Source of the DNA: Isurus oxyrinchus
Lineage: Eukaryota
Assembly (NCBI GenBank): GCA_026770705.1
Contig: JANJGN010000100.1
Location: forward strand, 992,001 to 1,056,000
Reading direction: 5' to 3'
DNA length: 64,000 nucleotides
Part shown: piece after piece, positions 1-59,596 of the stretch
Numbering within the stretch: the stretch's first letter is position 1
How the letters are laid out: each line of letters begins with the position of its first letter
Notes under the pieces: model-generated
What the model was told of the DNA's origin: nothing
What the model saw: the letters and a program-made list of their open reading frames with translations, nothing else
Databases searched by the model: none
Program-made: the position numbers and the translations under genes

Positions 1-75
1 CGTCACCGCCATGGATACCAGGTAACAAATGATACATCTAGAGAGACAACACCTTCTTCGAGACAGGATCACAAT
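1..75 (-). pseudogene. GPR139-like GPCR copy A, 5' part of exon 2 (continues beyond window start)
   Basis: Reverse strand reads ttacag|ATT GTG ATC CTG TCT CGA AGA AGG TGT... = IVILSRRRCCLSRCIICYLVSMAVT, homologous to ILSRGRCGLSKCITRYLVAMAM of copy D. The first 14 nt of exon 2 (CTAACTTGGCAGTG-like) are missing, so splicing from the phase-1 exon 1 is frameshifted. Confidence 0.85.
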
Positions 76-1121
76 CTGTAATACAGATAAAGATATTGTA
101 AGATACGTTGTGTAAGAAAGAGAGATAGAGAGAAAACGCATCTGGGAGAGATCAAGATCAAGAAACTTTGTGAATTTCCTCCACCTGCAGCCCCACAATC
201 CTCTTTCCCACCGCACCCCAACAACCTGCCAATCCCTCAAGAATATTGCTTTAAAGGATTCTGGTGAAAATGATACATATAAGACGTGATTATGAGTTCA
301 AAAGTATCGCAAAAGATAGGGACAATTGTTTCCATGGTTGAAATAATAATCCTAAAACTAAGGTAGGTCAATGACATAAGAACATTATAAAGACACGCAG
401 CAGAGAGCACGAAGACATCCAACAACATTGGAGCAGCAAATAGATAGAAAGTAAAATAAAATATCTACTACATCGACAAATTCTATCCATAATAGTGATG
501 CAGCTGGAAAAAAAAAACAATTGGACAATACCTGTGGAAACTAGCCAGAAAACAAATTATGTCAGGTTGAGCATCAAAACTGACCCCAGTCAACGAATGA
601 CTGTAAAAAATACCGAGCCTTGGAAATGACCGCAGTCAACTTGCTCAATTTGTTTGAGACTGAGAAACAGAACGTTGAGTTTGAGGCAAATACCAATCAT
701 TCATCGAAACGTTACTTTTACGTTGCTTAAATATCTGTCAAAAATCGGTGCCTAATCAGGCTCCTTAGTCAATTGAGCTACTAAGTTCAGCTGGGAAATA
801 TTCAATCAATTATCGATCATTCAACCATTATTGGGAATTATTCCTTTAATCGCAGTGGCAACAAATCAGTGGAAATGCATTTGCACTTTAATATGTTTTT
901 TTTCAATAAACAACGGGAACACGGTCAAGAATACAACTGAACTATTTTTACACTGTCATAAAACTCACAAGAACCTTGTAGCAACACAGTGGAAGTACAA
1001 TTACACCCTGATAACAATGTGCTATTCCATAGAGCCAGTTAGAAAATAAATTTTCATTCACATTGTAACAACATTTTGATTAATCACCCATAGGAACTCC
1101 ATCATAATGGTATGATTATAT

Positions 1122-1640
1122 AAACATAGAAACATAGAAAATAGGAGCAGGAGTAGGCCATTCGGCCCCTCAAGCCTGCTCCGCCATTCGTTATGATCAT
1201 GGCTGATCATCCAATTCAATAACCTGTTCAAGCTTTCCCTCCATACCCTTTCACCACTTTCACCCCAAGAGGGCGAATATCGAAATTCTTCTCAAAAACA
1301 TACAATGTTTTAGACTAAACTACTTTCTGTGGTAGCGAATTTCAGAGGCTCACCTCCCTCTGTGTGCAGAAATTTCTCCTCATCTCAGTCCTAAATGGTC
1401 TGCTCCGTATCCTCAGACTGTGACCCCCGGTTCTGGACTCCCACATCATCGGGGACATCTTCCCTGCATCTACTCTGTCTATTCCTGTTAGAATTTTCTA
1501 GGTTTCTATGATATCCCCCCTCATTCTTCTGCACCCTAACAAATATAGTCCTAACCGAGTCAATCTCTCCTCTTATGTCAGCACTGCCATCCCAGGAATC
1601 AGCCAGGTAAACTTTCATTGCACTCGCTCTTATTTTCCCT
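1122..1640 (-). mobile_element. CR1-type LINE 3' end inserted in intron of copy A
   Basis: Begins with (AAACATAG)2 tail complement followed by ataggagcaggagtaggccattcggccc, typical of an antisense CR1 3' UTR; continues into degenerate RT C-terminal sequence. Confidence 0.75.
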
Positions 1641-2178: not shown

Positions 2179-2248
2179 CTGGAACCCTGATAGCTGCAAG
2201 GACGGGATAGTAAATGGCAAACACCAGACCAGTCGATACTCCATGCAT
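2179..2248 (-). pseudogene. GPR139-like GPCR copy A, coding exon 1
   Basis: ATG at 2248; MHGVSTGLVFAIYYPVLAAIRVP + G, then GTAAAG donor at 2178; 70 nt as in all paralogues. Confidence 0.88.
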
Positions 2249-2299
2249 TTCTATCTGACTCTTTGAGCGGGTTCTGCAAATCGTTATCAAATGGTCATA

Positions 2300-2394
2300 T
2301 CTATACACGGCCCCAGGCTCCAGGGAGATAATTAAATGGCCTGAAACTTTACATTAATTAAATTTAGGTAAAGAAAAACAGATCATTGCAGCTG
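2300..2394 (-). promoter_or_regulatory. Proximal promoter of copy A: TATA-like box, HD + O/E-like composite, E-box
   Basis: TATAGA 2305-2300; TAATTATCTCCCTGGAG 2334-2318; TTAATTA ~2354-2360; CAGCTG 2389-2394. The same layout recurs at all five paralogues. Confidence 0.7.
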
Positions 2395-2779
2395 CTGCTC
2401 AGCTGGTGTTCTGGACTTAATTGCTTGGAATGTTCTTTAATGAGATTTGAAACGAATCTAAAGTGAACCAGCGACATATATATATTGGTTGGATACTGGT
2501 GTTAGGCAAGGCAGTGGTGGTCACTACTGACCACGCTGATAATGGCAAATGTTACTAAGAAAACGTAGAGAAGTTCTCGCTCCTGATTATTGCTCAGCAC
2601 GCGTTGTCACGAATCAGATGCAACCTGTTGTCAACTGCCTTGAGACTATTCACCCGCTTTAACACTACTGTCTGTGTATTAATTGAGGATACATCCAGTT
2701 ACATTCGCTTGTCGTCGGTGTCCATAAGCCCAATTCCTCACGCTTGCATTAAGTGCAAGCTCAGATCTTTTTCATTATG

Positions 2780-4390: not shown

Positions 4391-4445
4391 AAATATATTG
4401 CTATAGATACACGAATGGATCCTAGTGATATCGGTTGCTTTAATC

Positions 4446-4575
4446 GGAAAGGGTCATGAGGACTCGAAACGTCAACTCTTTTCTCCTCCGCCGATGCTGC
4501 CAGACCTACTGAGTTTTTCCAGGTAATTCTGTTTTTGTTTTAGATTTCCAGCATCCGCAGTTTTCTTTGTTTTCA
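4446..4575 (+). mobile_element. Penelope-like terminal repeat fragment
   Basis: gaaagggtcatgaggactcgaaacgtcaac...gatgctgccagacctactgagtttttccagg...gatttccagcatccgcag; the same element recurs at ~19400, ~23930, ~42940, ~51930, ~60400. Confidence 0.6.
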
Positions 4576-7160: not shown

Positions 7161-7639
7161 CAGCATGGCAGAGAATGACAAATTAATATGTTATTGGGTA
7201 GGGGATGATTTGTGCTGAGCTAAGGTATGTTGGTTGGACGGCAAAGAAGTTGGGGAAGAAGAAGGGGAAGGAGAAGAAGAAGAAGTGGAAAAAAAATAAA
7301 AGAATGCTTGAGAAAAATGTAAACTGTTCTGCTAACAGGCAGAGGGGAAAATATCTGTTACCGTCACTCTATAAACAGCCAACATACAGTTGCAGTGGTG
7401 AGTGATCTCCTCTTGTTGTAATGACTTTTTAACGCATTGCTTCACCAATCCAATACAGGTGCCTCCTCCCTAGGTACAGGGCCAAACACTAATAATATTC
7501 CGAGCTCATTCTTAACAACACACTGTAGATTCGCATTACCCGAGCTAGGCAACTACCTATGGATAAAGTCACAATTAGCAAGAATATGTTTTAAATGTTG
7601 AGGCCACAATGAATAAAAAAACAATTTCTTGCTCATTAG

Positions 7640-8452
7640 AGAACTGCTCCCTGTACAAATACGAGGTAATGCATTTTGGAAGGTTTAATACAGGCAGGAA
7701 TTATACATTAAATGGCAGAACACTTAAGAGCATTGATGGGCACAGGGATCTGGATGTACAGAGCCACAGGTCACTGAAAGTGGCAACGCAGTTGGATATA
7801 GTAGTCAGGAAGGCATATGGCATGCTTGCCTTCATTGGCAGGGGTGTTGAGTATAAAAGCTGGGAAGTCATGCTGCAGCTGTATAGAACCTTGGTTAGGC
7901 CACACTTGGAATACTGCGTGCATTTCTGGTCGCCACATTACCAGAAGGATATGGAGGCGTTGGAGAGGATGCAGAGGAGGTTTACCAGGATGCTGCCTGG
8001 TCTGGAGGTTATTTGCTACGTGGAGCGTTTGCTGAAACTCGGATTGTTCTCCCTAGAGTGATGGAGATTGAGGGGCGACTTGATAGAAGTTTACAAAATT
8101 ATGAGTGGCATGGACAGGGTAGATAATCAGAAGTTTATTTTCAGGGTTGAAGAGTCAATTACTAGGGGAACAGAGATTTAAGGTGAGAGGAGAAAACCAT
8201 ACAGGAGATGTGTGGGGCAAAGTTTTTTTACGCTGAGGGTGTTGAGTGTCTGGAATTCGCTGCCAGAGAAGGTGGTGGAAGCAGGTACGATAATGATATT
8301 TAAGAGGCAGCTTGACAAATACATGAATAGGATGGGAATAGAAGAATACGGACCCCAGAAATGCAAAATGTTTTAGTTGACGGGCGATATGATCAGCGCA
8401 GGTGTGGTGGCCGAAGGGCCTATTCTTGTGCTGTACTTTTCTTTGTTCTTTG
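7640..8452 (+). mobile_element. CR1 LINE 3' fragment (RT C-terminus + 3' UTR)
   Basis: ORF 7609-8061: EVMHFGR...KAYGMLAFIGRGVEYKSWEVMLQLYRTLVRPHLEYCVHFWSPHY...ALERMQRRFTRMLPGL; ends in a TTCTTTGTTCTTT tail. Confidence 0.93.
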
Positions 8453-13249: not shown

Positions 13250-13432
13250 TATCAATTGTTAAATATTTTAATAATTAGGTTCAGTGGATATTTCACCCCA
13301 TTCTTTAACTCGTCTCTGATTTTACTCTGGGTCCCAGCATAAATAAATGGGTTGAAACAGGAAATCAATAGCTGAAGCATATATACAAATTTCTGGATAA
13401 TGAATGCGACGTTAGTGAAATCAGAATTTGAG
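13250..13432 (-). pseudogene. GPR139-like GPCR copy B, residual 3' end of exon 2 (TM7 + C-tail)
   Basis: Reads ...FIIQKFVYMLQLLISCFNPFIYAGTQSKIRDELKNGVKYPLNLIIKIFKQ; homology stops near 13432, so TM1-TM6 are deleted. Confidence 0.88.
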
Positions 13433-13489
13433 GTATTGGTAACATTGGCGGATATTTTTTATCCCAGTAAACAATTGTTCCCATCCAAC

Positions 13490-15012: not shown

Positions 15013-15082
15013 CTGGAACGCCGATAACTGCAAGGAAGGGTTAGTAAATGACAAACGCCAGACCTTTTGGTGCTGCATGCAT
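15013..15082 (-). pseudogene. GPR139-like GPCR copy B, coding exon 1 with nonsense codon
   Basis: MHAAPKGLAFVIY*PFLAVIGVP; TAA at 15043-15041; GTAAG donor at 15012. Confidence 0.9.
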
Positions 15083-15130
15083 TTCTTTCAGAAGCTAGAG
15101 CGTGCTCTGCAATCCACTTTGTATGGTTCT

Positions 15131-15243
15131 CTTATACCTCATGCCAGGCTCTAGAGTAATAATTAGTTGACTTGGTATCTTGCTTAATTAAGTTAAAATA
15201 AACTTCAATTAAAGTTATTGTAACAAACAGATTAGTGCAGCTG
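15131..15243 (-). promoter_or_regulatory. Proximal promoter of copy B (O/E-like half degraded)
   Basis: TATAAG 15136-15131; TAATTATTACTCTAGAG 15165-15149; TTAATTA ~15184-15190; CAGCTG 15238-15243. Confidence 0.6.
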
Positions 15244-15689
15244 CTGCTAACTATTGTTTTCGTTTCAATGAAATGGAATGTTTTCTTTCATGAGTTCAGG
15301 TGCGACTCTGAAGTAAAATGCCCAGAGACCATAGAAGCAACCGAATTGCAATGTTTGTTTTAAAAAAAAATTAAATTAAAAACGATGAGTGCCTGAACAT
15401 TGTGTTCAGGTTGAAGCAACGTTTTTCACAACTGCCCACCTGAAAAGTGCAGAAAATCGCAGTCAATTTTTCATCAGCCTCCACGATCACCATTCAACTT
15501 CAACCGGGTTGCAAGTCTCTCTGAGACTTGACACACTCTAATACAACTGTCGTTATTCTATTCGATGTAGCAGCTACGGTTAAGTCGTGTTGCCTTCAGG
15601 AAACATAAGGGTACATTTTTCATAATTTGGTTCAGTGCACACTAGACCAATTCATCGTGAGAAGCTCCGATAGAATACAATTACAATCA

Positions 15690-18920: not shown

Positions 18921-19394
18921 TGCAAAAGCAGCAAATAATGTAATTTTGTATTTATAGCTCAGGATTATGGGTGAGTGGGAAATCACGGCTCAAATCATGC
19001 TGTTTATCAAATAACAGAAAAGAATTTGTAAATCAGTTTCAGCGACTCTGCCTTTTCAAATCATTCCATGAGTATGGAACAGGCTCCTCGGCTGTCAATG
19101 GTTTTAACTTCGAAAATGAACCTGGATATAATAGGTAGCGTCCCAACCTCTCAGCAGAAGCTGCTGTGAACCAACTCCAAAAGACACCCCCAGCCCCGCC
19201 CTCCCACTGGCTTTGCTGGGTAAAGGAGGGCAGTTCATTATCCAGCCAAACAAATTGACTAGCAACCTGCAAACGCATCCATGCACAACAATGGCAACAG
19301 TAAATTGGGAGATGCCTTCTGGTCAGTTATGTGATGGAAACAACCTTGGAGCCTCTGCCATCACTTTCCACAGTTCCAGACAACAATACAAATG

Positions 19395-19580
19395 TAAAAG
19401 CAAAATACTGCGGATGCTGCAAATCTGAAACAAAATCAAAAATTCCTGGAAAAACTCAGCAGTTCTGACAGCATCTGCGGATCAGATGAAGATTCATACA
19501 GACTCGAAATGACAACTGTATTAATCTCGGCAGAAGCTGTAAGACCCGCTGAGTTTTTCCAGGCATTTTTGTTTTTGTAA
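19395..19580. mobile_element. Penelope-like repeat in inverted (palindromic) arrangement
   Basis: cctggaaaaactcagc...cagcatctgc at the left arm mirrors cagaagctg...gctgagtttttccagg at the right arm. Confidence 0.6.
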
Positions 19581-19821: not shown

Positions 19822-22800
19822 TGTTAGGAACCATATATAGTTTTAAGTAAGGCATGTTTCTATTTGTTGATGTTAGGAACAAGGCATAGCTTTCAGTTTA
19901 ATTTTTACTTGGGTGTTGAGAAAGGTGAAAGCTGGGTTTGCTTTCATGTTAGAGATTGTTATTGAGATGGAGCCAGGAAGTCTCCAGACCCTGTATGTAC
20001 ACATGCATTTTTTAGTGAGGTTTATGACACTTGAAATGGAGAGCTGCGTTAATAAGCAGTTGGTACTTTAAGGAAGTTGAAACAAACACAAAAAACAGTG
20101 AAATAAATAAAACTGTGCTATTGCCTAGCACCAGGGGATCAGAGTGACGCCCATCGAGAAATGCAGCTATTAGTTCAGCTGGCAGGCATATAACAAAGTG
20201 AAGGCAGGAAATGTCTAAGACTCTCTCTCCAGCAGGGCATGATGCCAGGTTTCTGAGGAAATGATTCGAAGGAGTTGCAACGTATTGCTATAACACTGAA
20301 GTAATTTTCAATTTAAACTGAATTTCGCTGATAATTCAAGGGCGATACCAATCGTGGAAAAAAAAATTGCATGAGCTTTTCGAAGTCTACAAGAAAAGAA
20401 ACCTATTTGCAACTGAACCAGTGTTAGCCTTATTGTGGGAATCATGGTACTGGAATGTTCTGTCCATAAGGTGTATGGCTGGCATAAAAGGGACGGCGTG
20501 ATTTTGGATCTTTTTTCCTTGGGGTTTGTGTTGAAATATTTCCAACATTTTTGTTGTCTAATGTACTTTAGTTAATGTTGCTTGTTTTGAGAATTTTGAA
20601 GCGTTTTGTAAAAACAAATCAACAACAGACTCTTGTGAATCTCTTTTAAAATGTACTTCCCACGATTACAAATATAATTAACATCTATGAGGCCAGATTC
20701 CATTGTTGGATCTGACATGTCGAGTAATAACATCAGTTGGGGTCATAAGATAGCGAGGGCTCTTGCAGAGTTAAAAATTTTTGAATTTATGTGAGATATT
20801 TGAACCCTTAAAGAAACGAGGAAGCTGAGTTACTCTGCATAGAAACAAGATTTGCTGTAAAGTAATGCAAAGTTTGGAGAACAATATTTGCCTTGATTAT
20901 TTCTAATTTCTTATAGGAACAGAAGATGTAACTGTGGATTATTAAACATCCTTTACTAAGATTACACTGAGAGAGTTAGCTCATGAATAGAGTGGAAAAA
21001 GAAAAGCAGCATTTCGTAAAGATGATGTGGTTAAAGACCCTAACCAGCATTTAGAATTAAAATGATTTAGCACAGCACCAGTTAGATAAGATTCATCTAC
21101 AGATGAACAAAAGAGAAAACTTGAATTGGAGGAAAAATAAAAGTGAAAGAGAAATGAGCAGCTTTGAATTAGAAGAAAACGAGAAAGAGAAATGAAAAAC
21201 CTCTAATTAAAGAAATACAGGGAAATTAACAATAAATGAATAAGAAAGAAGGCAAAATGAAAAAAAAAGGAAAGAGCAAGATCAATGGAATTGAAAAAAA
21301 AACTCAAATTAGAAAAGGGAAGAGGAATGGAAATGGAAAACTCTGAATGGAAATAGGAGGGAAAACAGAGATTGAAAAAATGGAAATTCAAAAACTTGAG
21401 CTTGAGTTTCCAAGAGAGGAAGATCTGAGGCAGCATGATTGGATGGTGATAAGGTGTGAATAAAGAAAGAAAGGCTGGATAGCCTTTCATGGGATGATAT
21501 TGATTCCCTTGAGGAATTTGATTTAACTGGAAGTTTTCTGCTCATGCCTAAATTTACAGAGGATTTGGCTAAATGTTATTCCATTCCGTTTGAAAAGGTA
21601 GCAATGAAGTTTAAGTTGCTAGAAGGTATTTGGCGTTTAATGCTATAATATCTCGTGACAGGTACAGCAATGAATGTGTATAATAGTTACTCAAAAGGAC
21701 AATCAGCATACTATGTTGCTGTACATATTGATGAAATGTTTGTGTTAGGCCATACTTTAGAATAACATTTACAAAACTTGAACAAATTGTTTGTTGGATT
21801 ACAAAGAGCCAATTTGGTCATAAGTTTTGCAAAGCGTGAATTTACCAAAACACGAGTGACATATTTGGGCTAAATTGTGCGTCAATGCCAAGTAACACCT
21901 AGACAATCAAAAAATAAGGGCCTTTTTAGATTTTCCAATGTCTAAAGCAATGAGGAGGATTTTGTGTACACAGACAGAATAGATTTATTCGGAATTTCAG
22001 CAGGATTTCAGCACCTTAGGGGATATTCTAACAAGATTGTTGAAGAATTGCAAAATATTTGAATTTCCAGAGGAGTCTCAGAGTGCTTGTGTTAGCTTCA
22101 AAATTGTACTAACTATTGAAATGGTTTTAGCAGCACCAAATTTAACCAAGCCATTTAAACTGGTTCTTCATGCCACCGACATGGATGTTGGTGCAGTTTC
22201 GGCACAGGGGGACGAGATGTGGATCGGTCAGTTACCTCTCTGGAAAGTTAAATTCTGTCATAAGAAATATTCAACTATGGAAAAGGAGAATTTGCGTTTC
22301 ATGTTGGCGCTACAGCACTTTAAAAGCCACAAATTCAGCATATCTGCAGAGGCTTTTACACATATGGACCATAATGCTTTAACCTTTTTACCAAAGTTTC
22401 GTAAGAATCTGACACAATTCTGGCGGGGTTTAGAGCTACAAATATAAAATTTGACAAAACATTCAAGTAGCCGGAAGAGACAATAAAGAACCAGGTGCTT
22501 TAACAACAGCAAATATGGAGGAAGAAGAATATTGTGATCAAATTGTGTTTGCAGTAGTTGATTCTTATGGAAAATATTCATAATTTTTTTGTTAATTCAT
22601 TGCCACAGCTAGAGTAAAATCTGTATAAATAACATGGGATTGGTAATAAGAGCAGGTCATAATGTAAAACGAACATGTTTCTGATTGATACCTTTTCATT
22701 TTTTTGTGGGGAGATGTTAGGAACTAGATATAACTTTTAAGTTTTATATTTGCATAAAACATGTTTAAGAAAGTTGAAACCTCGGCTTCCTTTTACTTTA

Positions 22801-23924: not shown

Positions 23925-24035
23925 ACAAAAACAAAAATAAATATACCTGGAAAAACTCAGCAAGTCTGGCAGCATCTGCGAAGAGGAATACAGTTAAAGT
24001 TTCGAGTCCGAATGACCCTTCAACAGAACTAAGTA
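23925..24035 (-). mobile_element. Penelope-like terminal repeat with hammerhead-like core
   Basis: Reverse strand ctgttgaagggtcattcggactcgaaactttaac...gatgctgccagacttgctgagtttttccagg. Confidence 0.6.
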
Positions 24036-24351
24036 AAAATGGAAAATAGGTGAAATATAAGCAGTGGAGATGGATGTTTGAAGGGATAAGGAAGGATAGG
24101 ATCAGAAGCCATTATGTCAGAGGTCACTGAGGATTCTGGAGGAATTGGAGATAAAAGGCAAGAAGATACTGAACTCACGTGGTTATCGTTGAAATTGTGC
24201 AGTCACATTGGGCAAGAGGACACATGGTGAGCTTAGTTAGTTGGACTGTGCGGAACAAAGAGAATATGAGTGACCAAGATCAGATGGAAGGATACTGCTG
24301 TGAGAGATATAAGGGCAGTGGCAATGGAAGAGAATTGGGTGATTACATGGA

Positions 24352-24645
24352 GAGCAAGAAGAAGAATTAATAATGATGATAATAATAATAAGAAAAAGAA
24401 TAATAATAATAAGAAGAACAAGAAGAAGAAGAGCAAGAAGACGGTAATGATGAGGATGATGATGGTGATGATGATGTTGATGCTCAGGATGATGTTGATG
24501 ATAGTGATGCTGATGATGTTGGCGATGTTGATGTGGGTGAGGATAATAATAATGCTGATGATAATAAAGTGTATGAGGATGCTGAATATGATGGTGCTGA
24601 TGATGATTTGGATGACGATACTAAGATGCTGGTAATGAGGATGGA
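24352..24645. repeat. Compound trinucleotide repeat (AAG/AAT/GAT)n
   Basis: Runs of aag, aat and gat triplets; these generate the spurious M/I-rich ORFs. Confidence 0.95.
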
Positions 24646-25879
24646 CACTTAAGGAACATAAAATTACAGGGCTACGGGGATAGAATGGGGAGATTAAACT
24701 AAAGGGATTACTCTGCATAGGTCCAGCATAGACTCGATGGCCGGATTCGCCCCTGTGCATTTTACTGACTTCAGAGAACCCAGTTGCAGCAACGTATGGC
24801 AATTATATCTCTCCCTAGGTAAGGAGACCAAAGCTGAACGGAGTACCGCAAACACATTGTTAACAACACCATACATAAAAGCAGCTTAACGTCCATACTC
24901 TCATTATCCCAGCCGCCCGCAATAAAGTTGCCAAATCCGTTGTTGTAGTTTTAGTGTTTAACAACCTTCACTGAGTAAAAACCACAGACACATAGTCCTC
25001 TTGCATATTTAACCCTCTGTTTCTTTCTGTTACAATTAACATGAAACACAAGAAATATAAATGCAATTCGACACGCCACAATAAATCCTTGTTCATCAGC
25101 GAGCTGAAGACAGAATCAACAGTAATAGATGTAGTTCTTCATCAATATATTAAAACTGAACAAACCTATTGCGCCATTATAATTTTCTAACAGAAGCGTC
25201 AGAGCACGAATCGAGCTAGAAACAATCCTTTGTTGACTGACTAATAGCAGAGGGAGAGTTTTCATCACTCGGGGACATCAAGGAAAGAGAAGAAAAGCGA
25301 GTGAGAAAAACAGAGTTAATGACCCAGACAGAACGACAGTGATCGGCCGAAATGGAGAGGCGCAGGCAGATAAAACAAACATACACCAACTGAGACACAG
25401 AGAGCCAGAGACCAGAAAGTGCAGCTAGATTTCATAATCCCATCCCTTTGTTTATTTATAGTGACTGGCATAAAGCAAGACTACATTTACATAGCGCCGT
25501 TCACTAACTCAGAAATTCAAATTGCTGAACAGACAAGGAAGTAATTTTGAAGTGTAGTTACTTTTCTAATGTAATGATTGAGTTACAGAAAAAATGCGGA
25601 ATTGAAAGGTGCTTAAAGAAGCCTCAGGAGCTATTTGCTATTATGGAATCTAGCTTTCCGTACCATCTCTTTTCCAGATGCAGATCCAGCAGTTGTTATG
25701 ATTTCTTGAATTTTGACATGCTGCTCAATTGCAATTTTATTCGTTTAGTGTTCCCAAAAAGTGTGGCTCAAAGCGTTGGGCCTCTAGACCGTCTTCAACT
25801 AAAAAAATATTAGAAAGTTGTACATTCTCTTTAGGTTCTACAAACATTTCAAGGAGCTCTTTAAGAAGTCATACAATCG

Positions 25880-28060: not shown

Positions 28061-28184
28061 GCAATGCTCAAATCCCATAAAAAAATAATAAATAACACAA
28101 TAAACAAAAACAAACAAACAAACAAAGAGTCGTGCAGAAAGACAAAGAGACAATCAGCCAGGTATATAGCCAGGGTAATGGATG

Positions 28185-28390
28185 GGCAGACAAATGGGCA
28201 TGCAGACAGACAGATAGACAGATAGATGAACAAATAGATGGAGCGTTTGATAGATAGTGAGATAGATGGATAGATGGATTATTATATGTATATAGATTGA
28301 TTGATGGGTAGATAGTTGTCGAATACAGGGATGGACTGATTGACAGAAGGAAGGATCGAAGGACGGATGGATGAATGGACGGAAGATGCC
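28185..28390. repeat. (GATA)n/(GACA)n/(GGAT)n degenerate tetranucleotide repeat
   Basis: gatagacagatagatg...gatggatgaatggacgg runs. Confidence 0.85.
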
Positions 28391-28624: not shown

Positions 28625-29542
28625 CTACTCTCCAATTTTAACTATTTTAACCAAAATGTTCACTGGATATTTCAGCCCATTCTTTAACTCGGTCCTGAAT
28701 TTACTCTGGGTCCCTGCATAAATAAACGGGTTGGTACAGGAGCTCAATAACTGAAGTATAAATCCTTTTTCCTCAAGAGTAAATGTTCCTTCAGTAGAAG
28801 CGGATCCTGAGAAATAGGTTACTTTCGCAATTTGGACATAGATGATAGATATAAATAAATAGCAAATATAACAAAATGAACCTTCCTGAGATGGCAAAGT
28901 GTAAAACAATTCACTTTCCCCGCTTCTCCATCACTGGGTCACTCTGATTTTCTCCATTGCCCTGGGTACAGAGTCTCCTGCGAGCACTATTGGCCGCTAG
29001 AATGTACCAGGCAGTCAGAGCATTGAGGGGTAAAATCAGAATGAATGGTAGACAAGGGGTTACAATGCAACAAATCCAGTCATTTGCGGCCCATGCTGCC
29101 GACTTGTAAAATATTGCTTTTACGCTGCAGAACCAGGGTATATTTTTAATTGTGTATCTCGGTCCATATATAAAATACAAGAATGCATTTTTTACACAGG
29201 TGAGTGCGGATACGATTCCAATGACCCATGCTACCATCCTCTCGTTGCAATTTTTAATTTTCAGCTCCCTGCCACAAATGGTCACAAATCGATCAAAGGT
29301 GATAGCGACCGTTAAACAGGCAGAATTGTCTGTAGCTGCAAAAATTAGTGCAGAACGGAGACTGCACATTGGTGTGATGGACAGGAAATTGAATAGGAAA
29401 TAAATCCCAGAAATTCGGTTTAATTTTACAGCCGTAACTATGACCAGGAGATCCATCACCGCCATGGACACCATGTAATATGTGATATATCCAGAGAGGC
29501 CGCATCTTCCTCGAGACAGGATCATGATCACTGCCAAGTTAG
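28625..29542 (-). pseudogene. GPR139-like GPCR copy C, exon 2 (nonsense + frameshift)
   Basis: Acceptor tattgcag at 29543; ANLAVIMILSRGRCGLS...MDLL...TFDRFVTIC...PCLPFILILPLN; TGA at 28913-28911 replaces Ser of RKSI; +1 frameshift ~28850; NPFIYAGTQSKFR; stop 28625. Confidence 0.92.
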
Positions 29543-31798: not shown

Positions 31799-31868
31799 CT
31801 GGAACCCCGATAGCTGCAATGGCGGGATAGTAAATGGCAAACAGCAGGCCTTTTGGTACTCCCTGCAT
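31799..31868 (-). pseudogene. GPR139-like GPCR copy C, coding exon 1
   Basis: MQGVPKGLLFAIYYPAIAAIGVP + G|GTAAGG donor at 31798. Confidence 0.9.
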
Positions 31869-31918
31869 TTCAATCAGAAGGTCTGAGCGCGTTCTGCACT
31901 GCATCAAAAATTGACAAA

Positions 31919-32002
31919 TTTATACCTGATATCAGGCACCAGGGAGATAATTAGATGGTTTAAAATAACCTTAATTTTGTAAGAAACAAATTAGTCCATC
32001 TG
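31919..32002 (-). promoter_or_regulatory. Proximal promoter of copy C
   Basis: TATAAA 31924-31919; TAATTATCTCCCTGGTG 31953-31937; TTAATT 31971-31976; E-box CATCTG 31997-32002. Confidence 0.7.
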
Positions 32003-32129
32003 CTGCTGGGACTGGTCTTTGTTTTACTGCAATTGAATGGAAGATTTTTCATGGAATCTGACACGGATCTAAAGTGAAATGTACAAGATGATCACAGTTA
32101 TATGTCTGCATTAAAACAAAAATAGGCAG

Positions 32130-35400: not shown

Positions 35401-36200
35401 AGTGTGAGGTGACGCGTTTTAGTCGGAGGAAAATGGACAGGCAATGTAAAATAAGGGGTGAAATTTTGAAGGAAGTGCAGGGATCAGAACGAACTGCATG
35501 TATATGCACTTAGTTCATTGAAGGTGGCAGGACAGGGAGAGGGAGCAGACAACGAAGTGCACAATTACCTGGGCTTTATTACCAAGATCATATAGTACAA
35601 TAGCAGGGAGGATATGCTGAATTTATGCAAGACACTCGTTAGATCTCAGCTGGGGTATTGTGCACAGTTGTGGGCGCGACATTGTAGGGAGGATGTGAAT
35701 GCATTGGAGACGTTGCAGAAGAAGTTCACAGGAAAATTCCCAGGGATGAGAAACTTCAGCTGTGAGGATATATTGGAGAGGTTGCTACTCTTCTCCTTGG
35801 AAGGCAGAAGACTAAGAGAAGATTTGATAGAAGTTTTCAAAATGATGAGGGAAGTGGACAAAGTAGACGGGGAGAAGCTGCTCCCACTCGTAAAAGGTGC
35901 AAGAATGAGAGGGCAGAGATTTAAAGTGATTTGCAAAATAAGTAAATGTGACTCGAGAAAACCTTTATCATACAATGAGTATTTCAGGTCTCGAATGCAC
36001 TGCCTGGAACTGTGATCGACGCAGGTTCAATCAAAACATTTAAGAGGGCGTTAGATGATTATTTAAGTAGAAAAAATGTGCAGGGGTGCAGGGCAAAGGC
36101 AGAACAATAACACTAGGCCATAATGCTAATTTGGAGAGCCAGTGCAGACACAATGGGCCGAATGGACTTCTTCAGCGCCATTAGATGTAGTGATTCTGTG
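32430..36200 (+). mobile_element. Near full-length decayed CR1 LINE (ORF1 esterase, ORF2 endonuclease + RT)
   Basis: ORF1 SGNH-esterase motifs (PGARI-like, VHIGTN, MNIWLERWCRREGFR); ORF2 YVNTQSIVNK, GDFN, NYRPVSLTLVVCKILE, KLVDD, LCKTLVRSQLGYCAQLW; 3' tail gtgattctgtgat. Many stops and frameshifts. Confidence 0.92.
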
Positions 36201-40891: not shown

Positions 40892-41801
40892 TTATTGTTG
40901 AGTAAATTTTACAATAAGAATCCATGGATATTTCAGCGCATTCTTTAACTGGTCTCTGAAATTACTCTGGGTGCCTGCATAAATAAACGGGTTTATACAA
41001 GAACTCAAAAGCTGAAGCATTATTCCGATTTCCTCCAGGACAAAATTTAGTCCATTGACACCAGAACCAGAAAAATACGTGACCCCCGCAATTCTGACAT
41101 AGAGACAATTAATTAGAAGCCAAATCCACAACAGGACGAAGTTTCCTGAGATACAAAAGAGCAAGGCGATGGACTTCCTCCGGTTCTCCATCTGTGGGTC
41201 GCTCTGATTCTCTCCATCTCTCTGCGTCCGGAGCCTCCTGCGGCTCTATTAGCCACTAGAATGTATCTGACAGTCCGAGCGTTGAGCAGTAAAATCAGAG
41301 TGAATGCGAGGCAAGGCATTAAAATGTGGAGAATCAGGTCATATGTGGTCCATGCAGGTGATGTATAAAATGTTCCTTTTACGCTGCAGAACCAGGGGGT
41401 ATTGTTAATTGTGTGCAGGGGCTCATATATAAAATACAGAAAGGAAGATTTGAAGCAGTTCACTACACAAACCGCACCTATAACATACGTCGCCATCTTC
41501 TCAGTGCAATATTTGACTTGGCGCTTCCGGCAGCAGATAGCCACAAATCGATCAAAGGTAAAAGCGATCGTTAACCAGGCGGAAGTGCCGAAAGCTACAG
41601 TGTTTAGCACGACACGAAGGCTGCATAAAGGTGTGATGGACAAAAAACTGTCTCGGAAATAGATGCCAACAATCCTGTTTAAGATCACGCTGGTAATAAT
41701 AACTAGGAGATCCGCCATTGCCATGGCCACCAGGTAGCGAGTGATGCACTTGGAAAGACCACACCTTCCTCTGGAAAGAATAGCAATAGCCACCAAGTTA
41801 G
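40892..41801 (-). CDS. GPR139-like class A GPCR copy D, exon 2 (single 1-nt frameshift at ~41242)
   Basis: Acceptor gttccag at 41802; ANLVAIAILSRGRCGLSKCITRYLVAMAMADLL...TFDRFVAICC...PCLAFTLILLLN...; GCC(C)GC lacks one C; then RRRLRTQRDGENQSDPQMENRRKSIALLF...LQLLSSCINPFIYAGTQSNFR...; stop 40892. Restoring one base gives a 326-aa 7TM protein with exon 1. Confidence 0.9.
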
Positions 41802-42339
41802 CTGGAACATAGTAAAAGAGGCAGAGAGAGAATGAGGAAATATGTAAAATGTATGTGTGTGACACAGCGAGAAAGGAACCGTTTTTAATCTTACACCAAA
41901 CAAAACCATCGGTTTTGCAGCACTTTCAGTGATACCTGCAGCTTTACCCATGACCCTGAGTTGGGAACTATAGCTGCCTCTACGGGCAGTTCCTGCGATT
42001 AAAATGATCATTCTTATTCGCAATACGGCAGCCCAAAGACATCAGAGCATACAATAATACAATGGAAGATAAAGGAAAACAAGGAGGCATCGGAAATTAG
42101 TTCAATCACAGAAATGCAAAAACTGGCCCTTCTCACAGGTCACATCCCCCTCAGCACAAAGATCGTCCTCGGCCCAAAGACATATGCAAAAATACTCACT
42201 TCTAGAATGCACGGTAATCAGCATGTTCGAAAGCTTCACAGAGAGAAGTGAATGAACAACTATCGCTTCCCTACTTTGGGAGGAGATGTTGGTGAATGCC
42301 TGTTCTAACTCCGGCCGCCTGCTTATGTAGTCATGCGGC

Positions 42340-42700: not shown

Positions 42701-42929
42701 ATCGCCAGTTCGGTTTGAACCATTGAGCAAGTGGCAGGAGAGGAGGCTTCAATGAGCGGAAGGACCGTCCCCACTCCTCCCAGCCCCCGGCCCTTACAAT
42801 GCATTATCGTCATAATCGTACATTACATTGTTTGGAATATTGACCAGCTTATTCAGAGAGTGGATATCGAATTTAATGCTTATTTAAATGAAAGCAAAAT
42901 GCTGTGGCACTAGAGGTCTGAATTTAAAA

Positions 42930-43115
42930 AAAAAGAAATGCTAGGAAAAACTCAGCAGGCCTAGCAGCGTCTGTGGAGAGAGCGACAGAGTTAATGTTTC
43001 AAGTCCAATATGACTGGTGTTCCGAAGAAGAGTCATGCGCACTTGAAACATTCCTCCCCTTTCTCTCTCAACATATGCTACCAGACCTGCTGAGCTTTTT
43101 CCAGCACATTTTGTC
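42930..43115. mobile_element. Penelope-like palindromic repeat
   Basis: aaaaactcagcagg...tgtttcaagtc...atgact mirrored by agtcatg...acttgaaaca...cctgctgagctttttccagc; centre ~43020. Confidence 0.65.
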
Positions 43116-44126
43116 TTTAATACGTTTGTACTCGGATTCGAGAGCTGGTGAAATTTAAACAACCCCACACAATGTGGGGCAAATAGGTATATTCCCGGAC
43201 CTATCCAGTTGTTAGGATAAGAAAGAACACCAGAATTCAGCAGGGGTCACTTTGGAACCGTCAACAGCAGCAATGCGGAAGGCAAGAGCTTGGTTGAACC
43301 AATGAATTTTAAAAACAGAGAGCAGCGGCTGTCAGTTTGGGAAAAAAATGCAGACAAATTGAGAAAATGTATACCCGTCACATAGCTTATATTTCTGTTA
43401 AACATGGGTGTCTAATAATATTTCTTCAATAAATTCACAACTAACGTTCAATGAGACTAATGTAATGGTTAAATACTTTCAATCAGCAATGTAATTGTGT
43501 AAATTATTTATTGTCAATACAGGAAAAATGCATGAGAGCTATTTTTATGCCGTGATACCAGTGTGATAATTCACCAAGGGTAATAATGCCAATAACGAAG
43601 TAAAGCTACGTTTATGTTGAGATAACAACGTGACAATGTACCCACAGCAACATCCCAATAACGTAACAGAAATATATTTACATCTTGAGGTGCTATGGTA
43701 ATGGCAGGAATCAATTGTATAATCAATGGTTGCGGTAGGGAGTGGGGAGTGGTATCGATCAAGGACAGATGGTACAATATTAAAAAATGAAGATTTTATA
43801 CCGATAATGTGAAGAAAACCATGTTGATGAACTGATTGAAACGACGCTGTTAAAAGCGAGATATTGTGCCATCAACAGTAATAAATTACAGCGCTAATAT
43901 TGAAAAACCTAGTAGTAATATGTAAAATGGTAAAAATTATACTTTAAGTTAAGCAAAATTATACCAGCTATAAGGAGGGAAATTGCCCAGTGACAAAAAG
44001 ATCAAGTAAATTTTGACTTCAGATTGAAGGAAGAATATTGTACGATGGAGGAAGAGCTGCTGAGGATGAGCATTAATGCAGATATTCAGTGATACCGTAA
44101 GTTAATAAACGCCTACAATAATTTAC

Positions 44127-44196
44127 CTGGAATCCCGATAGCTGCGAGGACAGGATAGTAAATGGCAAAGACCAGGCCTTTTGGTGTTCCATGCAT
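44127..44196 (-). CDS. GPR139-like GPCR copy D, coding exon 1
   Basis: MHGTPKGLVFAIYYPVLAAIGIP + G|GTAAAT donor at 44126; intact. Confidence 0.9.
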
Positions 44197-44247
44197 CTCT
44201 ACCAGAAGCTCCGAGCGCGTTCTCGACTACACCGGGATATTGTCACA

Positions 44248-44340
44248 TTTATGCCTAACGTAAGGCTCCAGGGAGATAATTAGATGCATTGTTTCTTTTT
44301 ATTAATTGGACTGATTGAAACAACTAGTTAAGTCCAGCTG
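44248..44340 (-). promoter_or_regulatory. Proximal promoter of copy D
   Basis: CATAAA 44253-44248; TAATTATCTCCCTGGAG 44282-44266; ATTAATTGG 44301-44309; CAGCTG 44335-44340. Confidence 0.7.
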
Positions 44341-44669
44341 CTCCCAGGCGCATGTTTGTTGTTTTTGGGACGGACTGATTTTTTGAAGAGGTCAGCTTAA
44401 AACTGAAATAGCCCGACAATATCCGATGAGCCCAAATATATTTCTTCATCAATGATAATAAAAGGTTTAAAAGGAAGTTCCAATGATTAAAGTGAGCGTT
44501 GGACATTTTGCATTAGCGGGTTCAAAGTCCTCAGTGACGCAGTATCAGCACAAGAGAGAAATGAGCAGAGATATTCTGAATTAGAAAGATAACACAGTCA
44601 GGGCCTGGTCTAAATCATTTTTCATTCCGTGTGGTCACCGCTCACATGCAAAACAGTTACTGTGCATCC

Positions 44670-53660: not shown

Positions 53661-53874
53661 TCACCCTCAGCTTTGAGAGGTTCAGGACTTGAGTTCCTCC
53701 TGTTTAACGCCCAATTTCACTGTTGCAGGCGTCCATTTCCATTTTCGTTACATTTTAGAAAATAAAACGGTCATCAGAATTGCGCTGCTGTCCCGGAGAA
53801 TTTCAATTAGAGCCGTGTGAGATACCTTGAAAAAAACATTGGATTCTATCAAAGCATAAACAAGGGTCCGACAG

Positions 53875-53970
53875 CAGCTCAAAAAATCTGTTTGTTTAAT
53901 TTAGCGTAATAAATGTTAAAAAAATGCAAATCATGTCATCATCTCCATGGAGCTTGACAATGAATATAAA
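53875..53970 (+). promoter_or_regulatory. Proximal promoter of copy E (degraded)
   Basis: CAGCTC 53875-53880; TTAATT ~53896; TCATCATCTCCATGGAG 53936-53952; TATAAA 53965-53970. Confidence 0.6.
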
Positions 53971-54020
53971 TTTCACAATCTTTGAGTGAATACACAACGT
54001 GTTGAGAGATTCAGTCAGAA

Positions 54021-54090
54021 ATTCACGGATCAGCAAAAGGCCTGTTGTTTGCCATTTACTACCCTGTCCTTGCAGCTCTCGGCATTCCAG
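54021..54090 (+). pseudogene. GPR139-like GPCR copy E, exon 1 with lost start codon
   Basis: ATT (for ATG) CAC GGA TCA GCA AAA GGC... = (I)HGSAKGLLFAIYYPVLAALGIP + G|GTGAAG. Confidence 0.88.
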
Positions 54091-55789: not shown

Positions 55790-58010
55790 GTGCAGACATT
55801 TCTTGTCATCTCCGTCATCCATGACCTTCCCGCTATTTGGAATCCCAGCCCTGTAGTTCAGATTCCTCAGACGTTGGAAACAGCCTCTCAGTGTCTACTA
55901 TCTCAAGGCCCTTTGGAACCATGCAGGTTTTAATGAGGCAACGCCCATTTTACTAAACTCCAGAGAATTTCGGCCCAGCCAGCCTCTGATCAGAGGACAG
56001 TGTCTCACCTCAGGCGTTAATCAAGTGAAACTTTGCTGTATTCCCGCCAATGCAAATATGGCGACAAGAACGCATACAACGTTTCAGCTGTGGTGACTCA
56101 AAGCCTCCTACAATTGTGCCAGGCATAGTTATTCTTGTACTGAACTACCCTTTCAAAAAAGGCCACATTAGGATTGCCTTCCAAGTGCCTTGCAATTTAA
56201 TGTATCTGCATGCTAACTTTATATGTTGCTTGTATAAGTGCACCCAAGTTTCTCTGAACATCAATATGTAGCAACGTCCATCCCTTAAAGCAATCCTGCT
56301 TTTCTATTCTTAAAAACCAGGTGAATAATCTCACATTTCCCCACTTTCTACCAGTTCTGCCGCATTGTTTTCCATTCACTGAGCTTATATAAATCTCCAA
56401 AACTCAGCCTCTCTTTGTCCTTCTTAAAAATTAAATTTGTACTAGCCCTGTATCTTCTGTAAACCTAGATACATCGACCCCTGTCTCTTCATGTAAGTCA
56501 TTAATACTGACTGCGAATAATCGAGGAGCAAACACTGGGCCTTCCATCAATCCATTTGACACAAACTGCTAATTTGACAATGTCTTAATTATGACTATTC
56601 TCTCTCCTTTCATGAATTTCAGTTTTATTCTTGCTAATTTGCAATCACCTGGGACTGATCGAGAATCTAGAGAATTTTGAAAAATAATAGGCAGCCCTAT
56701 CCACTTTCTCGGCAGTTATCTCTTCTAGAGCACAAGGATGGAGGACGTCAGGTCGTAGTGGTCTATCACGTTTTAATACCTTCAGTTTCTCGAAAAAATT
56801 TTTGTCAGTTAATAATAATTTTCTTAATTTCCCCATTTTACTTATCTTTCGAGAATGCCAATTTTGTCACCAACAGTGAAGGCAGTCATTAATTCATTGA
56901 TCATGGCTTATGCCATTTCCTCATTCTCCATAATAATTCCTACCGCCTAAGTTTTTTTCGACGGAATCAACGTTTGTGTCACCAAATCTTCTCCCCTTTA
57001 TATACCTGTAAAACTCTCACAATCTTATTTTTTTTTACATTCCTGGTCAGTTAACTCTTTTTAAAAATGTGCCTTAGCCTTTTTATCAACTTATGGTTGT
57101 TCATTTGCTGATATCGGAAACACTTCTAATCATCAAATTGCGACAACTCTTTGGGACATTACAATATTTTTCTCAGATCTCACATTATCCTTAATTGAGA
57201 GAGAAAGACACAGGTGCATATTTGATGCTAAGTTTTTATTTCTCAATGGAATTTATTCTTGCTGAACATTCTAAATTGTTTCTTGAAATGTTTCCAACTT
57301 TTTATTTAATGCCATAACTTTGAGTCTATTTACCCATTCAACATGAGCGAGTTCATCTCTCAAACGATATAATTATCATGATTTAAGTTTAACATTTGGT
57401 TTTGTAATTAGAGAATGTCACTTTCAAGGTTGACATGTAATTCACTTGTATTATACTGGCAAATTCTCTTTGAATCTTCTGTTATGTGGTAACTAATTGA
57501 CTCTGCATCATTACGCAATACTGGATATAATATAGCTTTATTTCCATGACATATTACTCCAGGAAACTGTCACAAATATATTTTGAGAACGCATCTTCAA
57601 GACCAACCTTGCCAATTCGATTGTTTCATTCTACATCAAGACTAATTATTGCGTCTCCATTGATACGATCTTCTCCAAAGTACCTTCTGTCCAAAGTATC
57701 AGGTCCGGCTCAAAGTCGAAGCTCATTAGTGTTTTCTAACTTTCCCCAGGTTGATTTTAGTTCACGATGATCTGAACAAAGCTCTGTCATCACTAGTGTG
57801 CAATGTCATTCCTTGCTCTCAGTGTTACCGATCCTTTTTTGCCATTCCCTCCGATGTTTGAAAGTGTTGTACACACTTGAATATTAATTCCTCAACATTG
57901 TTCAACGTGAAACATAGTTCCGTGAGGGCAATTAGATCAGATCCATTTATCTCTGTTTTTGCCACAAATCCATCAATTCTATTTGGTATGCTTTGCCTAT
58001 TCAGTTTAAG
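55790..58010 (-). mobile_element. Decayed CR1 LINE in intron of copy E
   Basis: Minus-strand fragments NRQSIPNRID...DLIALTE (endonuclease), EKLKVLKRDRPLRPDVLHP (RT), DVQRNLGALI. Confidence 0.75.
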
Positions 58011-58691
58011 AGTCTTGAAATGCATATCTTACCTGCATGGGCCTCGCTCAGAGCAACACAGCAATCCGAGCTATCTATCGGGAGAAGTGTGTGGAGGTAT
58101 GAGTGCGTTAATGAAAAAAAACACACTTCCACAAAGTCAGAGAGTACCATTTGTTCAGTCGCTCTTTTCTGTTTGAAAATATGTTGAACAAGTTGACGCC
58201 GAATTTTGTAAGAGTGAGAAATTTTACACTAGTTTATCGGATTAATGCAGTTTAGACCATCATATAATAATCCATTTTCAAATTAGCTGCTTTGTTGATT
58301 TGCTGCTAAGTAACCCCTAAATATAGTCTGCGGTATTTGCTGATGTGGTATTGTTCTTGTTTATTTGATTTATAGTATGTTCCTGTGGTGGTTTCGACTT
58401 GTTTTCGAGGTTTTTTTCTTATCCTTTACGTTTAACTTTATTATATTACGTTCTGGTGCGACGGACCTGTCTTATTTTGAACCAAATTGTTTGTTTTAAA
58501 CACAAAAACAAGTGCCCTCAGAGAAAAGGTTAGTTTTCTTTTCCAGTAACAAAGCTGGAAATTTTTCGCAGAACATGTCAGTTCAGGTGATTTTTCAGGG
58601 CATTGGCACAGGGATTTTTTTCATCCTACTCTCGCCCACACTAACAGTCATTTTATTTCCCCTCTGAGTCACTTGTCCCCCTCTGTTACAG

Positions 58692-59596
58692 CTAACTTAA
58701 CAGTGATTGCCATCTTATGTCGAGGAAGATGTGGCCTATCCAGATGCATCACCTGCAACCTGGTGTCTATGGTGGTGGCTGATCTCCTGCTCATTATCAG
58801 CACTGTATTATTGAACTGGATTGTTAGCATCTATTTCCCACTGAGTTTCCTGTCCATCACGCCAGTATTAATTTTTCGTTCTGTTGTAACCTATGCAGCA
58901 ATTGACAGTTCCTCTTGGTAAACGATGGCTTTCACCTTAGAATTGTGACCATTTGCTGCCAACAGTTAAAAATCAAACATTGCACTGAGAAAACAACGGC
59001 CTGGGTCATAATGATTGTGTGCGCGCTGAGTTGCATCAAAAATATTTCCCTCTTTTTTACACATGAACCGTTAACCATAATCAACAACGTCCCTTGGTTC
59101 TGCGGCATTAAATGAACATTCTATATCTCAACTGGATGGGTTACATTTCACTGGATTCATTGTATTTTAACGCGTTGCCTTCCTTTAATTCTGATTTTAC
59201 TGCTGAATGCTCTGACCGTCAAATATATTCTGTTGGCCAGTTGAGCCCGAAAGAGGCTTCGGACCCCGAGTCTTGGAGAGGGCCAGATTGACCCAGAGTT
59301 GGAAAACCGGCAAAAGTCCATTGCTTTACTCTTCGCCTTTTCAGGCAGTTTCATTATTTTATATTTATTGTTTTTTATAACCATCTTCTACGTCCGAGTT
59401 GCGAATATCACTTATTTCTCAGGTTCAAATTACAGTGAGTCTACATTCATTCTGGAGGAAAACGGATATATGCTTCAGCTCTTGAGTTGTTGCATAAACC
59501 CGTTCATTTATGCAGGGCCTCAGAACAAAAATCAGGGAGGAGTTAAAGAAAGGAGCGAAAAGCCCACTGTGTTTAATTGTTAATTTAGTTAAACGA
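58692..59596 (+). pseudogene. GPR139-like GPCR copy E, exon 2 (multiple stops and frameshifts)
   Basis: Acceptor gttacag at 58691; ANLTVIAILCRGRCGLSRCIT...ADLL; TAA 58919-58921; deletion removing DR of DRF; TGA 59113-59115 and 59242-59244; ENRQKSIALLF...CINPFIYAG; frameshift ~59530. Confidence 0.92.

Follow-up and report, generated by a model that had tools for sequence, protein, structure and literature searches.

GPR139 is described, in the part of the literature available here, as a single-copy receptor expressed in brain. Mutagenesis placed its agonist site at F109 (3x33), H187 (5x43), W241 (6x48), N271 (7x38) and R244 (6x51), and in the GPR139 model the charged part of L-Trp or L-Phe is held by N271 and R244 (PMC5430874, accessible sections). 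Unnamed orphan clades ('GPR210A/B') stand beside GPR139 and GPR142 in coelacanth, gar and fishes (PMC6504862, accessible sections). For sharks, the accessible sections of two catshark studies (PMC11979771, PMC10116579) describe V2Rs (about 35) as essentially the sole olfactory family, with a handful of OR, TAAR and ORA genes and no sizeable canonical class A olfactory repertoire, and those of a whale-shark paper (PMC8455134) report that G-protein-coupled receptors (GPCRs) are relatively few in cartilaginous fishes. Here we describe a stretch of 64,000 nt from Isurus oxyrinchus (GenBank assembly GCA_026770705.1, contig JANJGN010000100.1, positions 992,001 to 1,056,000 of the forward strand; 'the window' below, with positions counted from its first letter), which holds a decayed tandem array of five ancient paralogues from an orphan rhodopsin-class GPCR family that is expanded in cartilaginous fishes.

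The copies were called by tblastn searches of eight intact elasmobranch homologues against the window, which contains no N. Exon 1 (amino acids 1 to about 24) was found at five sites and exon 2 (amino acids about 24 to 325) at five matching sites, giving five paralogous class A GPCR copies (A to E), each of two coding exons. An intronless model of copy C was dropped because in tblastn every copy proved to have its own exon 1, lying further upstream. Copies A to D lie on the minus strand and copy E on the plus strand, so that D and E stand head to head, and the ATG-to-ATG distances between successive copies are 12.8, 16.8, 12.3 and 9.8 kb. Exon 1 is 70 nt long, its 23 codons opening with ATG and encoding a peptide like MHGxPKGLVFAIYYPVLAAIGVP, with a single base after them; it is closed in all five copies by a phase 1 donor (CCAG/GTRA, the slash marking the splice junction). 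The acceptor reads YAG/CTAACTT in copies C, D and E, in which exon 2 runs for about 0.9 kb up to the stop codon, and the intron of copies A, C and D measures about 2.1–2.3 kb, that of E 4.6 kb. The long minus-strand open reading frames (ORFs) at 28911–29639 (C) and 41113–41865 (D) encode 7tm_1 proteins, the Pfam scores of the two exon 2 ORFs being 49.2 and 53.9 bits respectively (gathering cut-off 30.5). On direct reading, the A..D motif of transmembrane helix 2 (TM2), DRF and NPFIY are legible in the window copies (DRF and NPFIY in C and D), and N1.50 is residue 25, which leaves an N-terminus of under about 10 amino acids ahead of TM1. These results bear out an earlier interpretation (the sequence-only reading), which had described five two-exon seven-transmembrane (7TM) paralogues about 10–16 kb apart (9.8–16.8 kb as measured), with LAxxD-like, DRF and NPFIY motifs and very short N-termini of about 10 amino acids. 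We regard the anatomy and the family assignment of the array as very nearly certain.

The extent of the family was assessed by a protein search with the copy D exon 2 ORF, single-exon ORFs and intact database homologues being used throughout. Of 1911 candidates in this search, 1548 proteins reached E ≤ 1e-5. All of the 120 best-scoring ones are elasmobranch, about 325 amino acids long and drawn from 15 species (Heterodontus francisci 66, Heptranchias perlo 18, Pristiophorus japonicus 9, Stegostoma, S. torazame and S. canicula 4 each, and fewer each in Mustelus, Rhincodon, Rhinoraja, Amblyraja, Mobula, Leucoraja and Chiloscyllium), and at least 66 distinct family proteins are present in one shark, H. 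francisci. With an intact member (P0005) as HMMER query against a library of 50%-identity representatives, 119 representatives were found at E ≤ 1e-30, followed by a sharp drop; 20 further named representatives comprised 19 from elasmobranchs and one from Callorhinchus milii, indicating that at least one member of the family occurs in chimaeras. The RefSeq names are inconsistent, mostly 'probable GPR139', with GPR15-like, capa-, FMRFamide-, sex-peptide- and TRH-receptor-like and GPR142 among the other automatic names. A tree of 144 rows contains two clades made up of Heterodontus alone (20 and 33 rows) together with short-branched 1:1 orthologue groups of sharks and skates, and in it copy C of the window falls with two proteins from Mustelus asterias (75% identity, support 95). 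That the family is expanded and lineage-specific, as had been proposed, is supported by the 1548 matches, the Heterodontus-only clades and the five copies in 60 kb. Its importance lies partly in its size, from many tens up to hundreds of genes in each genome; it is already present in RefSeq, where its automatic names are misleading.

All five window copies carry lesions. In copy A one codon is missing at the exon junction and the family's acceptor position reads TAT, the only nearby AG leading into the wrong frame and an early stop; with 32 codons of exon 2 visible, copy A is probably dead on what is an incomplete view. Copy B has a stop at codon 14 of exon 1, and just the last 65 or so exon 2 codons were found by blastn and tblastn (codons ~22–261 are lost), indicating that a deletion took the 3′ part of the intron together with about 240 codons. 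Copy C has a stop codon at 28911–28913 after ..MEKRGK and a frameshift between ~28885 and 28854 (TM6), and copy D has a single 1-nt deletion at 41241/41242 in intracellular loop 3 (ICL3), after ..VANRA. Copy E begins with ATT, has in-frame stops at 58919, 59113 and 59242 and two frameshifts (near 58940 and at 59516–59565), and has lost DRF. As no lesion is common to two copies the inactivations are independent, in agreement with the earlier claim (five of five copies are hit at different sites, A only probably). The further claim, of birth-and-death turnover in a pseudogene-rich family, fits both these lesions and the bursts seen in single species, with a pseudogene count that covers this window alone; by analogy, we infer that the family would be turned over by birth and death, as chemoreceptor repertoires are. 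Taken by itself the window is a modest result, a graveyard array that is useful mainly for dating and for its conserved promoter.

The lesion in copy D could be followed in a relative. A search of sequencing runs with copy D found five runs of undeclared kind, from two studies and one organism, which contain 0.28–0.30 of the copy D words, and four of them were aligned to the locus. The contigs of this relative span exon 2, the whole intron and the promoter of copy D, and differ from it at 40 of 1246 and 33 of 1088 letters (about 3%). Because the contigs run through the intron, the runs are genomic DNA of a close relative and hold no expression evidence; exon-only RNA as a reading of the five runs was ruled out on the same ground. 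An extra G is present behind 41241 in all four relative runs, exactly at the D frameshift (GG to GGG), and keeps the frame ..ANRARRRLRTQRDGENQSDPQMENRRKS.. open, and no further indel was seen in copy D exon 2 among these four runs. The open frame of the relative indicates that D was disabled after the split from that relative, or else that there is an assembly slip in the window. The 12 listed exon 2 differences between D and the relative comprise six synonymous and six non-synonymous changes, a partial list (there are 68 more differences) from which nothing is concluded.

The age of the array was judged from global identity between copies, calculated by partition and compared with shuffled sequences (means 0.44–0.51, maximum 0.54). 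At the DNA level identity between copies is 0.82 in exon 1 and 0.67–0.70 in exon 2. Upstream, from −150 to −1, it is 0.60 (shuffled mean 0.44–0.47, maximum 0.53) and over the first 100 nt of the intron 0.58, while the remaining intron, upstream and 3′ flank partitions give 0.49–0.54, at or near the shuffled background, with which blastn agrees. On these identities the five copies are best read as ancient paralogues, not recent duplicates, and since copies diverged by about 30% still have recognizable frames, each would have been under long purifying selection before its death. Exon 1 is clearly more alike than exon 2 among the five copies, even in those long dead, and this excess may stem from old gene conversion or from additional constraint, in the form of a signal anchor or of a promoter-proximal element. 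The conserved upstream block consists of an E-box-like element (AGCAGCAGCTG), TAATTA, TCCCTGGAG and a TATA-like site. TAATTA lies at −86, −85 or −83 in copies A, D, C and B, the TATA-like site at −57 or −56 in A, C, D and E, and the 21-nt core of the block has three occurrences at three or fewer mismatches against none expected. These elements show a proximal promoter, conserved between copies, with a TATA and a homeodomain-type site. The element TCCCTGGAG was considered as a putative O/E (EBF) site; compared with TCCCNNGGGA, which we take to be the O/E consensus, it has two mismatches in A, C, D and E and three in B, and two mismatches or fewer were reached by 26% of 2000 random 150-nt windows. 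Of the olfactory-type promoters that had been claimed, the conserved block with its homeodomain-type TAATTA and its TATA stands; the site read as O/E is conserved too, but its match to that consensus is no better than chance.

The name 'GPR139-like' given to these genes needed separate scrutiny. In a comparison with solved structures, one family member reaches 49.5 bits with human GPR139 and 50.9 bits with the PrRP receptor (PrRPR), in effect a tie. A profile of 53 members scores 69.4 bits with GPR139 (E 2e-18), 60.3 with PrRPR, 59.8 with CCKAR and 52–57 with the neurotensin (NTSR1), neuromedin U (NMUR2), TRH and chemokine receptors, so that with the family profile the lead of GPR139 over the peptide receptors is about 9 bits. 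The nearest non-chondrichthyan proteins are from a salamander (36% identity), Latimeria (34%), a teleost (33%) and amphioxus ('GPR139', 31–32%). IQ-TREE, applied to 39 rows, recovers the expanded family as a single clade (92/77), sister to an amphibian lineage (97/91) and apart from a conserved clade (100/100), it being noted that the trees contained no true GPR139 or GPR142 sequences. A true GPR139 was not seen among the 10 most distant named of the 150 best representatives, one of which (P0258) scores 59.5 bits against human GPR139. From the narrow score margin and the amphibian orphan as sister, 'GPR139-like' is a best-hit label and not a statement of orthology; the analogy with GPR139 drawn in the sequence-only reading is weak. 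NCBIfam, a prokaryote-oriented library, had no match for three family proteins, and in the protein atlas the neighbours are the family's own clusters or else invertebrate FMRFamide-type and generic peptide-GPCR clusters.

Two orphan lineages lie closest to the family. The first, the sister clade (Pleurodeles XP_069092602 and Xenopus tropicalis P0411, both 'probable GPR139' in RefSeq), is 32–36% identical to the family; it accounts for 20 amphibian clusters of 25 matches (frogs, caecilians and salamanders) and one sturgeon protein, and was absent from other groups among the matches returned. Unlike the family, this orphan (P0218, P0408–P0427) has one gene per species, is conserved at 66–74% and is not expanded, and as a single-copy gene in amphibians it would offer a tractable model (Xenopus) for the ancestral function. 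The second, a conserved gnathostome 'GPR139-like' orphan located by TMEM183A (Latimeria XP_005988539), is 33–34% identical to the family (P0226, P0235) and forms a clade that is single-copy in sturgeon, teleosts, amphibians, reptiles and sharks; of its shark members, that of S. canicula is 66% identical to the coelacanth protein and others are found in Stegostoma and Pristiophorus. As sharks also keep this single-copy gene, the expanded family is not its orthologue. The Latimeria-type orphan (P0226, P0290–P0407), some models of which are fused to TMEM183A, is neither GPR139 (it scores 70 bits with the human protein) nor part of the expanded family, and we know of no functional work on it. Either the Latimeria-type or the sister lineage may be one of the 'GPR210' clades of PMC6504862.

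Conservation was examined in 110 members of 300–345 amino acids (119 passed the length filter, nine being omitted unintentionally), with residue positions mapped by HMMER alignment to 7VUG/9M42 and a set of 26 canonical pocket positions. On the extracellular side mean entropy reaches 1.34 bits, compared with 0.74 bits on the intracellular one (Mann–Whitney p 8e-13), and it is 1.65 bits at the 26 pocket positions against 0.91 at other transmembrane positions (p 1e-6). The hypervariable positions are 3.28–3.36, 5.42/5.43, 6.49–6.54, extracellular loops 2 and 3 (ECL2, ECL3) and 7.39. Invariant or nearly so are RGRCGLS in intracellular loop 1 (ICL1), DRF, SDPEMExRRKS in ICL3 and N..IY, as are the class A residues N25 (109 of 110), D54 (110), D107-R108 (110), F109 (98) and N294 and Y298 (110), and in the 53-member alignment C83 and C162 (the Cys3.25–ECL2 pair) are nearly invariant. 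A shared intracellular face with a variable pocket fits one signalling partner and many ligands. Variation in the ligand pocket, in line with the sequence-only reading, is thus present as entropy (1.65 against 0.91 bits), a measure of variation alone and not of selection. The family also has features that are unusual in class A, position 6.48 being Tyr in 56 of the 110, P6.50 present in only 8 and P7.50 replaced by Thr in 42; there are acidic residues at 3.37 (D in 80) and 5.39 (D in 93), and the CGL of ICL1 and the D..R of ICL3 are invariant.

The same alignment bears on whether these genes could be a repertoire for amino-acid odorants (L-Trp/L-Phe type) that inherited the ligand chemistry of GPR139 and GPR142, as had been suggested. 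Amino acids are classical odorants for fish, GPR139 is the top solved match of the profile at 69.4 bits, and 3.33 is aromatic like F109 in 91 of the 110 members (Y 76, F 15). The single-member scores given above, however, put GPR139 and PrRPR level, and the other contact positions are variable. The R244 equivalent at 6.51 is Arg in just 3 members (Y 42, F 34, L 15), the column aligned with N271 has Asn in 31 (Y 47, F 25), 5.42 and 5.43 in the H187 region are among the most variable positions of the family, and 6.48 is divided between Y (56) and W (48). The tree likewise speaks against this possibility, with the family sister to the amphibian orphan and apart from the Latimeria-type 'GPR139-like' clade that sharks also keep. 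Recognition of amino acids in the GPR139 manner would thus find no support in these residues, and we consider an inherited amino-acid repertoire highly improbable.

What the intact members do can be approached from these features. They would be G-protein-coupled sensors with one common intracellular signalling interface and a diversified ligand pocket, most likely used by a sensory epithelium (chemosensory cells of the nasal, oral or skin type) to detect a variety of chemical cues from outside; the aromatic amino acids that activate GPR139 are not predicted as their ligands. By analogy with known repertoires we find a chemosensory use of the family plausible, if somewhat short of probable. A literature search for GPR139-like or GPCR expansion in sharks found no paper describing the family, which thus appears to be unrecognized in print, as had been proposed; the family is not mentioned in the accessible sections of PMC11979771 and PMC10116579, and datasets S7/S8 and the expression tables of PMC11979771 may hold values for it.

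Several points weigh against a chemosensory use. All window copies are dead, so the locus itself is silent on use, and the O/E-like site is no better than chance. The 110-member sample is biased to one subfamily and species (66 of its 120 source proteins are from Heterodontus) and was assessed by entropy, not by the ratio of non-synonymous to synonymous change (dN/dS), and since variability on the extracellular side is common to many GPCR families it is not diagnostic. In the sequencing-run search with copy D no RNA run contained the locus; five small possible-RNA runs from another organism had next to no copy D words. The 140 family proteins with a source seen all came from genome annotation (NCBI, UniRef, eukprot) and none from run assemblies, a weak negative as the source look-up needs an exact full-length match. 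In the available text of PMC10116579 the olfactory neurons of the catshark are all microvillous, Go/TRPC2-positive and V2R-dominated, and in that of PMC11979771 the 50 most specific genes of a 'brain & olfactory epithelium' library include no GPCR, V2Rs also being absent.

Some of these observations could also be explained if the expansion were largely functionless, the product of segmental or transposable element-associated duplication in repeat-rich shark genomes that left mostly neutral relics and a few conserved working members. The lesions in five of five window copies, the interleaving of the array with relics of long interspersed nuclear elements (LINEs) and long terminal repeat (LTR) elements and with a high-copy repeat, and the lack of transcript-derived proteins among the 140 would agree with this. 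Against it, hundreds of RefSeq models have full frames of about 325 amino acids with invariant DRF, N..IY, ICL1 and ICL3, paralogues with about 30% DNA divergence still have recognizable frames, and short-branched 1:1 orthologues are common to sharks and skates. The copies moreover keep intron, promoter and exon 1 and so are not retrocopies. We consider a mostly neutral origin of the expansion improbable.

The more serious alternative to a chemosensory use is an internal one, in which the intact receptors, sited in brain, gut, gonads or immune tissue, respond to a diversified set of the body's own ligands (neuropeptides, metabolites, peptides of immunity or reproduction) and the expansion tracks a ligand family that grew in parallel, not external odours. 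Three points count against it: no such expanded ligand family is known; a vertebrate GPCR family that runs to many tens of genes in a genome, with numerous pseudogenes and species bursts, is to our knowledge nearly always one of chemosensory or sensory-neuron receptors; and the hypervariable pocket suits many ligands. In its favour, the nearest solved relatives after GPR139 are the peptide receptors (PrRPR, CCKAR, NTSR1, NMUR2, TRHR and chemokine receptors, 52–60 bits), the protein atlas places invertebrate clusters of FMRFamide-type and peptide receptors next to it, and a conserved single-copy sister in amphibians and sturgeon is the pattern of a receptor for an endogenous ligand. The available text of PMC11979771 adds that certain V2R and OR genes of the catshark show expression in tissues other than the nose, which sits easily with an internal role. 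On balance an internal role seems unlikely, and should the family turn out to have no sensory role, it would make an unusual vertebrate example of internal GPCRs expanded on a massive scale.

Returning to the chemosensory reading, a large birth-and-death class A family with a hypervariable pocket is a concrete candidate for the missing receptors of sharks and rays, animals noted for keen chemical senses. In its strongest form, which we put forward tentatively and by analogy, the family could be a fifth major olfactory or chemosensory GPCR repertoire of vertebrates, specific to cartilaginous fish and derived from an orphan class A lineage that is single-copy in amphibians and sturgeon, with one-per-cell expression and a homeodomain/TATA promoter, and it might explain why chemical sensing is so keen in sharks although they have tiny sets of OR, TAAR and ORA genes.

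Coordinates of the parts of the five receptor copies in the window (the slash marks a splice junction)
Element	Position	Strand	State or motifs	Basis
Copy A exon 2 start (TM1 end to TM2)	1..110	−	cut by window start	tblastn (amino acids 22–53), direct reading
Copy A exon 1	2179..2248	−	MHGVSTGLVFAIYYPVLAAIRVP + G, intact, donor CCAG/GTAAAG	tblastn, reading
Copy A promoter block	2249..2400	−	AGCAGCAGCTGCA E-box-like, TAATTA −112/−86, TCCCTGGAG, TATA-like −57	
Copy B exon 2 3′-end relic	13252..13449	−	amino acids ~262–326, NPxxY region to stop	tblastn, blastn
Copy B exon 1	15013..15082	−	in-frame TAA 15041–15043	tblastn, reading
Copy B promoter block	15083..15250	−	degraded, no TATA-like site found	motif scan
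Copy C exon 2	28625..29542	−	NPFIY kept, stop + frameshift	ORF, tblastn, reading
Copy C exon 1	31799..31868	−	MQGVPKGLLFAIYYPAIAAIGVP + G, intact	tblastn, reading
Copy C promoter block	31869..32010	−	TAATTA −85, TATA-like −56	motif scan
Copy D exon 2	40892..41801	−	sole lesion 1-nt deletion	tblastn, reading, relative's contigs
Copy D exon 1	44127..44196	−	MHGTPKGLVFAIYYPVLAAIGIP + G, intact	tblastn, reading
Copy D promoter block	44197..44345	−	TAATTA −112/−86, TATA-like −57	motif scan
Copy E promoter block	53870..54020	+	partly degraded, TATA-like −56, homeodomain site lost	motif scan
Copy E exon 1	54021..54090	+	start codon ATG to ATT	reading
Copy E exon 2	58692..59626	+	stops + frameshifts, DRF lost	tblastn, reading

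Other features of the window lie within and between these copies. The intron of copy D contains a short interspersed repeat (42886–43118), and pieces related to it are found in both orientations at 4449–4536, 19390–19580, 23933–24029 and 60392–60592; its depth in the relative's runs, about 1e5 against about 40 in the flanks, indicates a very high-copy element resembling a short interspersed nuclear element (SINE) or a miniature inverted-repeat transposable element (MITE). Between copies B and C, the ORF at 22037–22447 (+) matches Pfam RT_RNaseH_2 (E 3e-7) and RT_RNaseH (E 2e-6) and is, to judge from these matches, a relic of an LTR-type retroelement. The ORFs at 7609–8061 (+) and 35614–36015 (+) have in common a stretch of 63 amino acids (44% identity, E 9e-16) and no Pfam match; both carry a ..LEYC..W.P.. 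motif, which we take to be that of the C-terminal part of LINE reverse transcriptase. Long low-complexity ORFs on both strands at 24233–24802 and 27784–28469 (I/L/M-rich and S/L/I-rich) are simple-sequence tracts between copies B and C.

It remains to set the family beside the systems it most resembles. Human GPR139 (PDB 7VUG, 9M42), a neuromodulatory orphan that responds to L-Trp and L-Phe, is likewise a class A 7TM receptor and among solved structures gives the family profile its highest score. The two have in common an aromatic residue at 3.33 and a motif, N-x-x-x-Y, in which proline is not strictly kept (42 of 110 family members have Thr at 7.50). Unlike GPR139, it does not conserve the equivalents of Arg 6x51, Asn 7x38 and His 5x43, its N-terminus is much shorter, its two-exon plan splits TM1, and in place of a single copy there are at least 66 proteins in one shark. 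The coding regions of OR and TAAR genes are intronless, whereas that of the family is split by an intron; the family has no sequence kinship with OR or TAAR beyond class A. Like OR and TAAR, and by analogy V1R/ORA and T2R, it forms tandem clusters with many pseudogenes and species-specific bursts, and it resembles OR and TAAR also in combining a conserved intracellular face with a variable pocket and a short conserved promoter with TATA and homeodomain sites.

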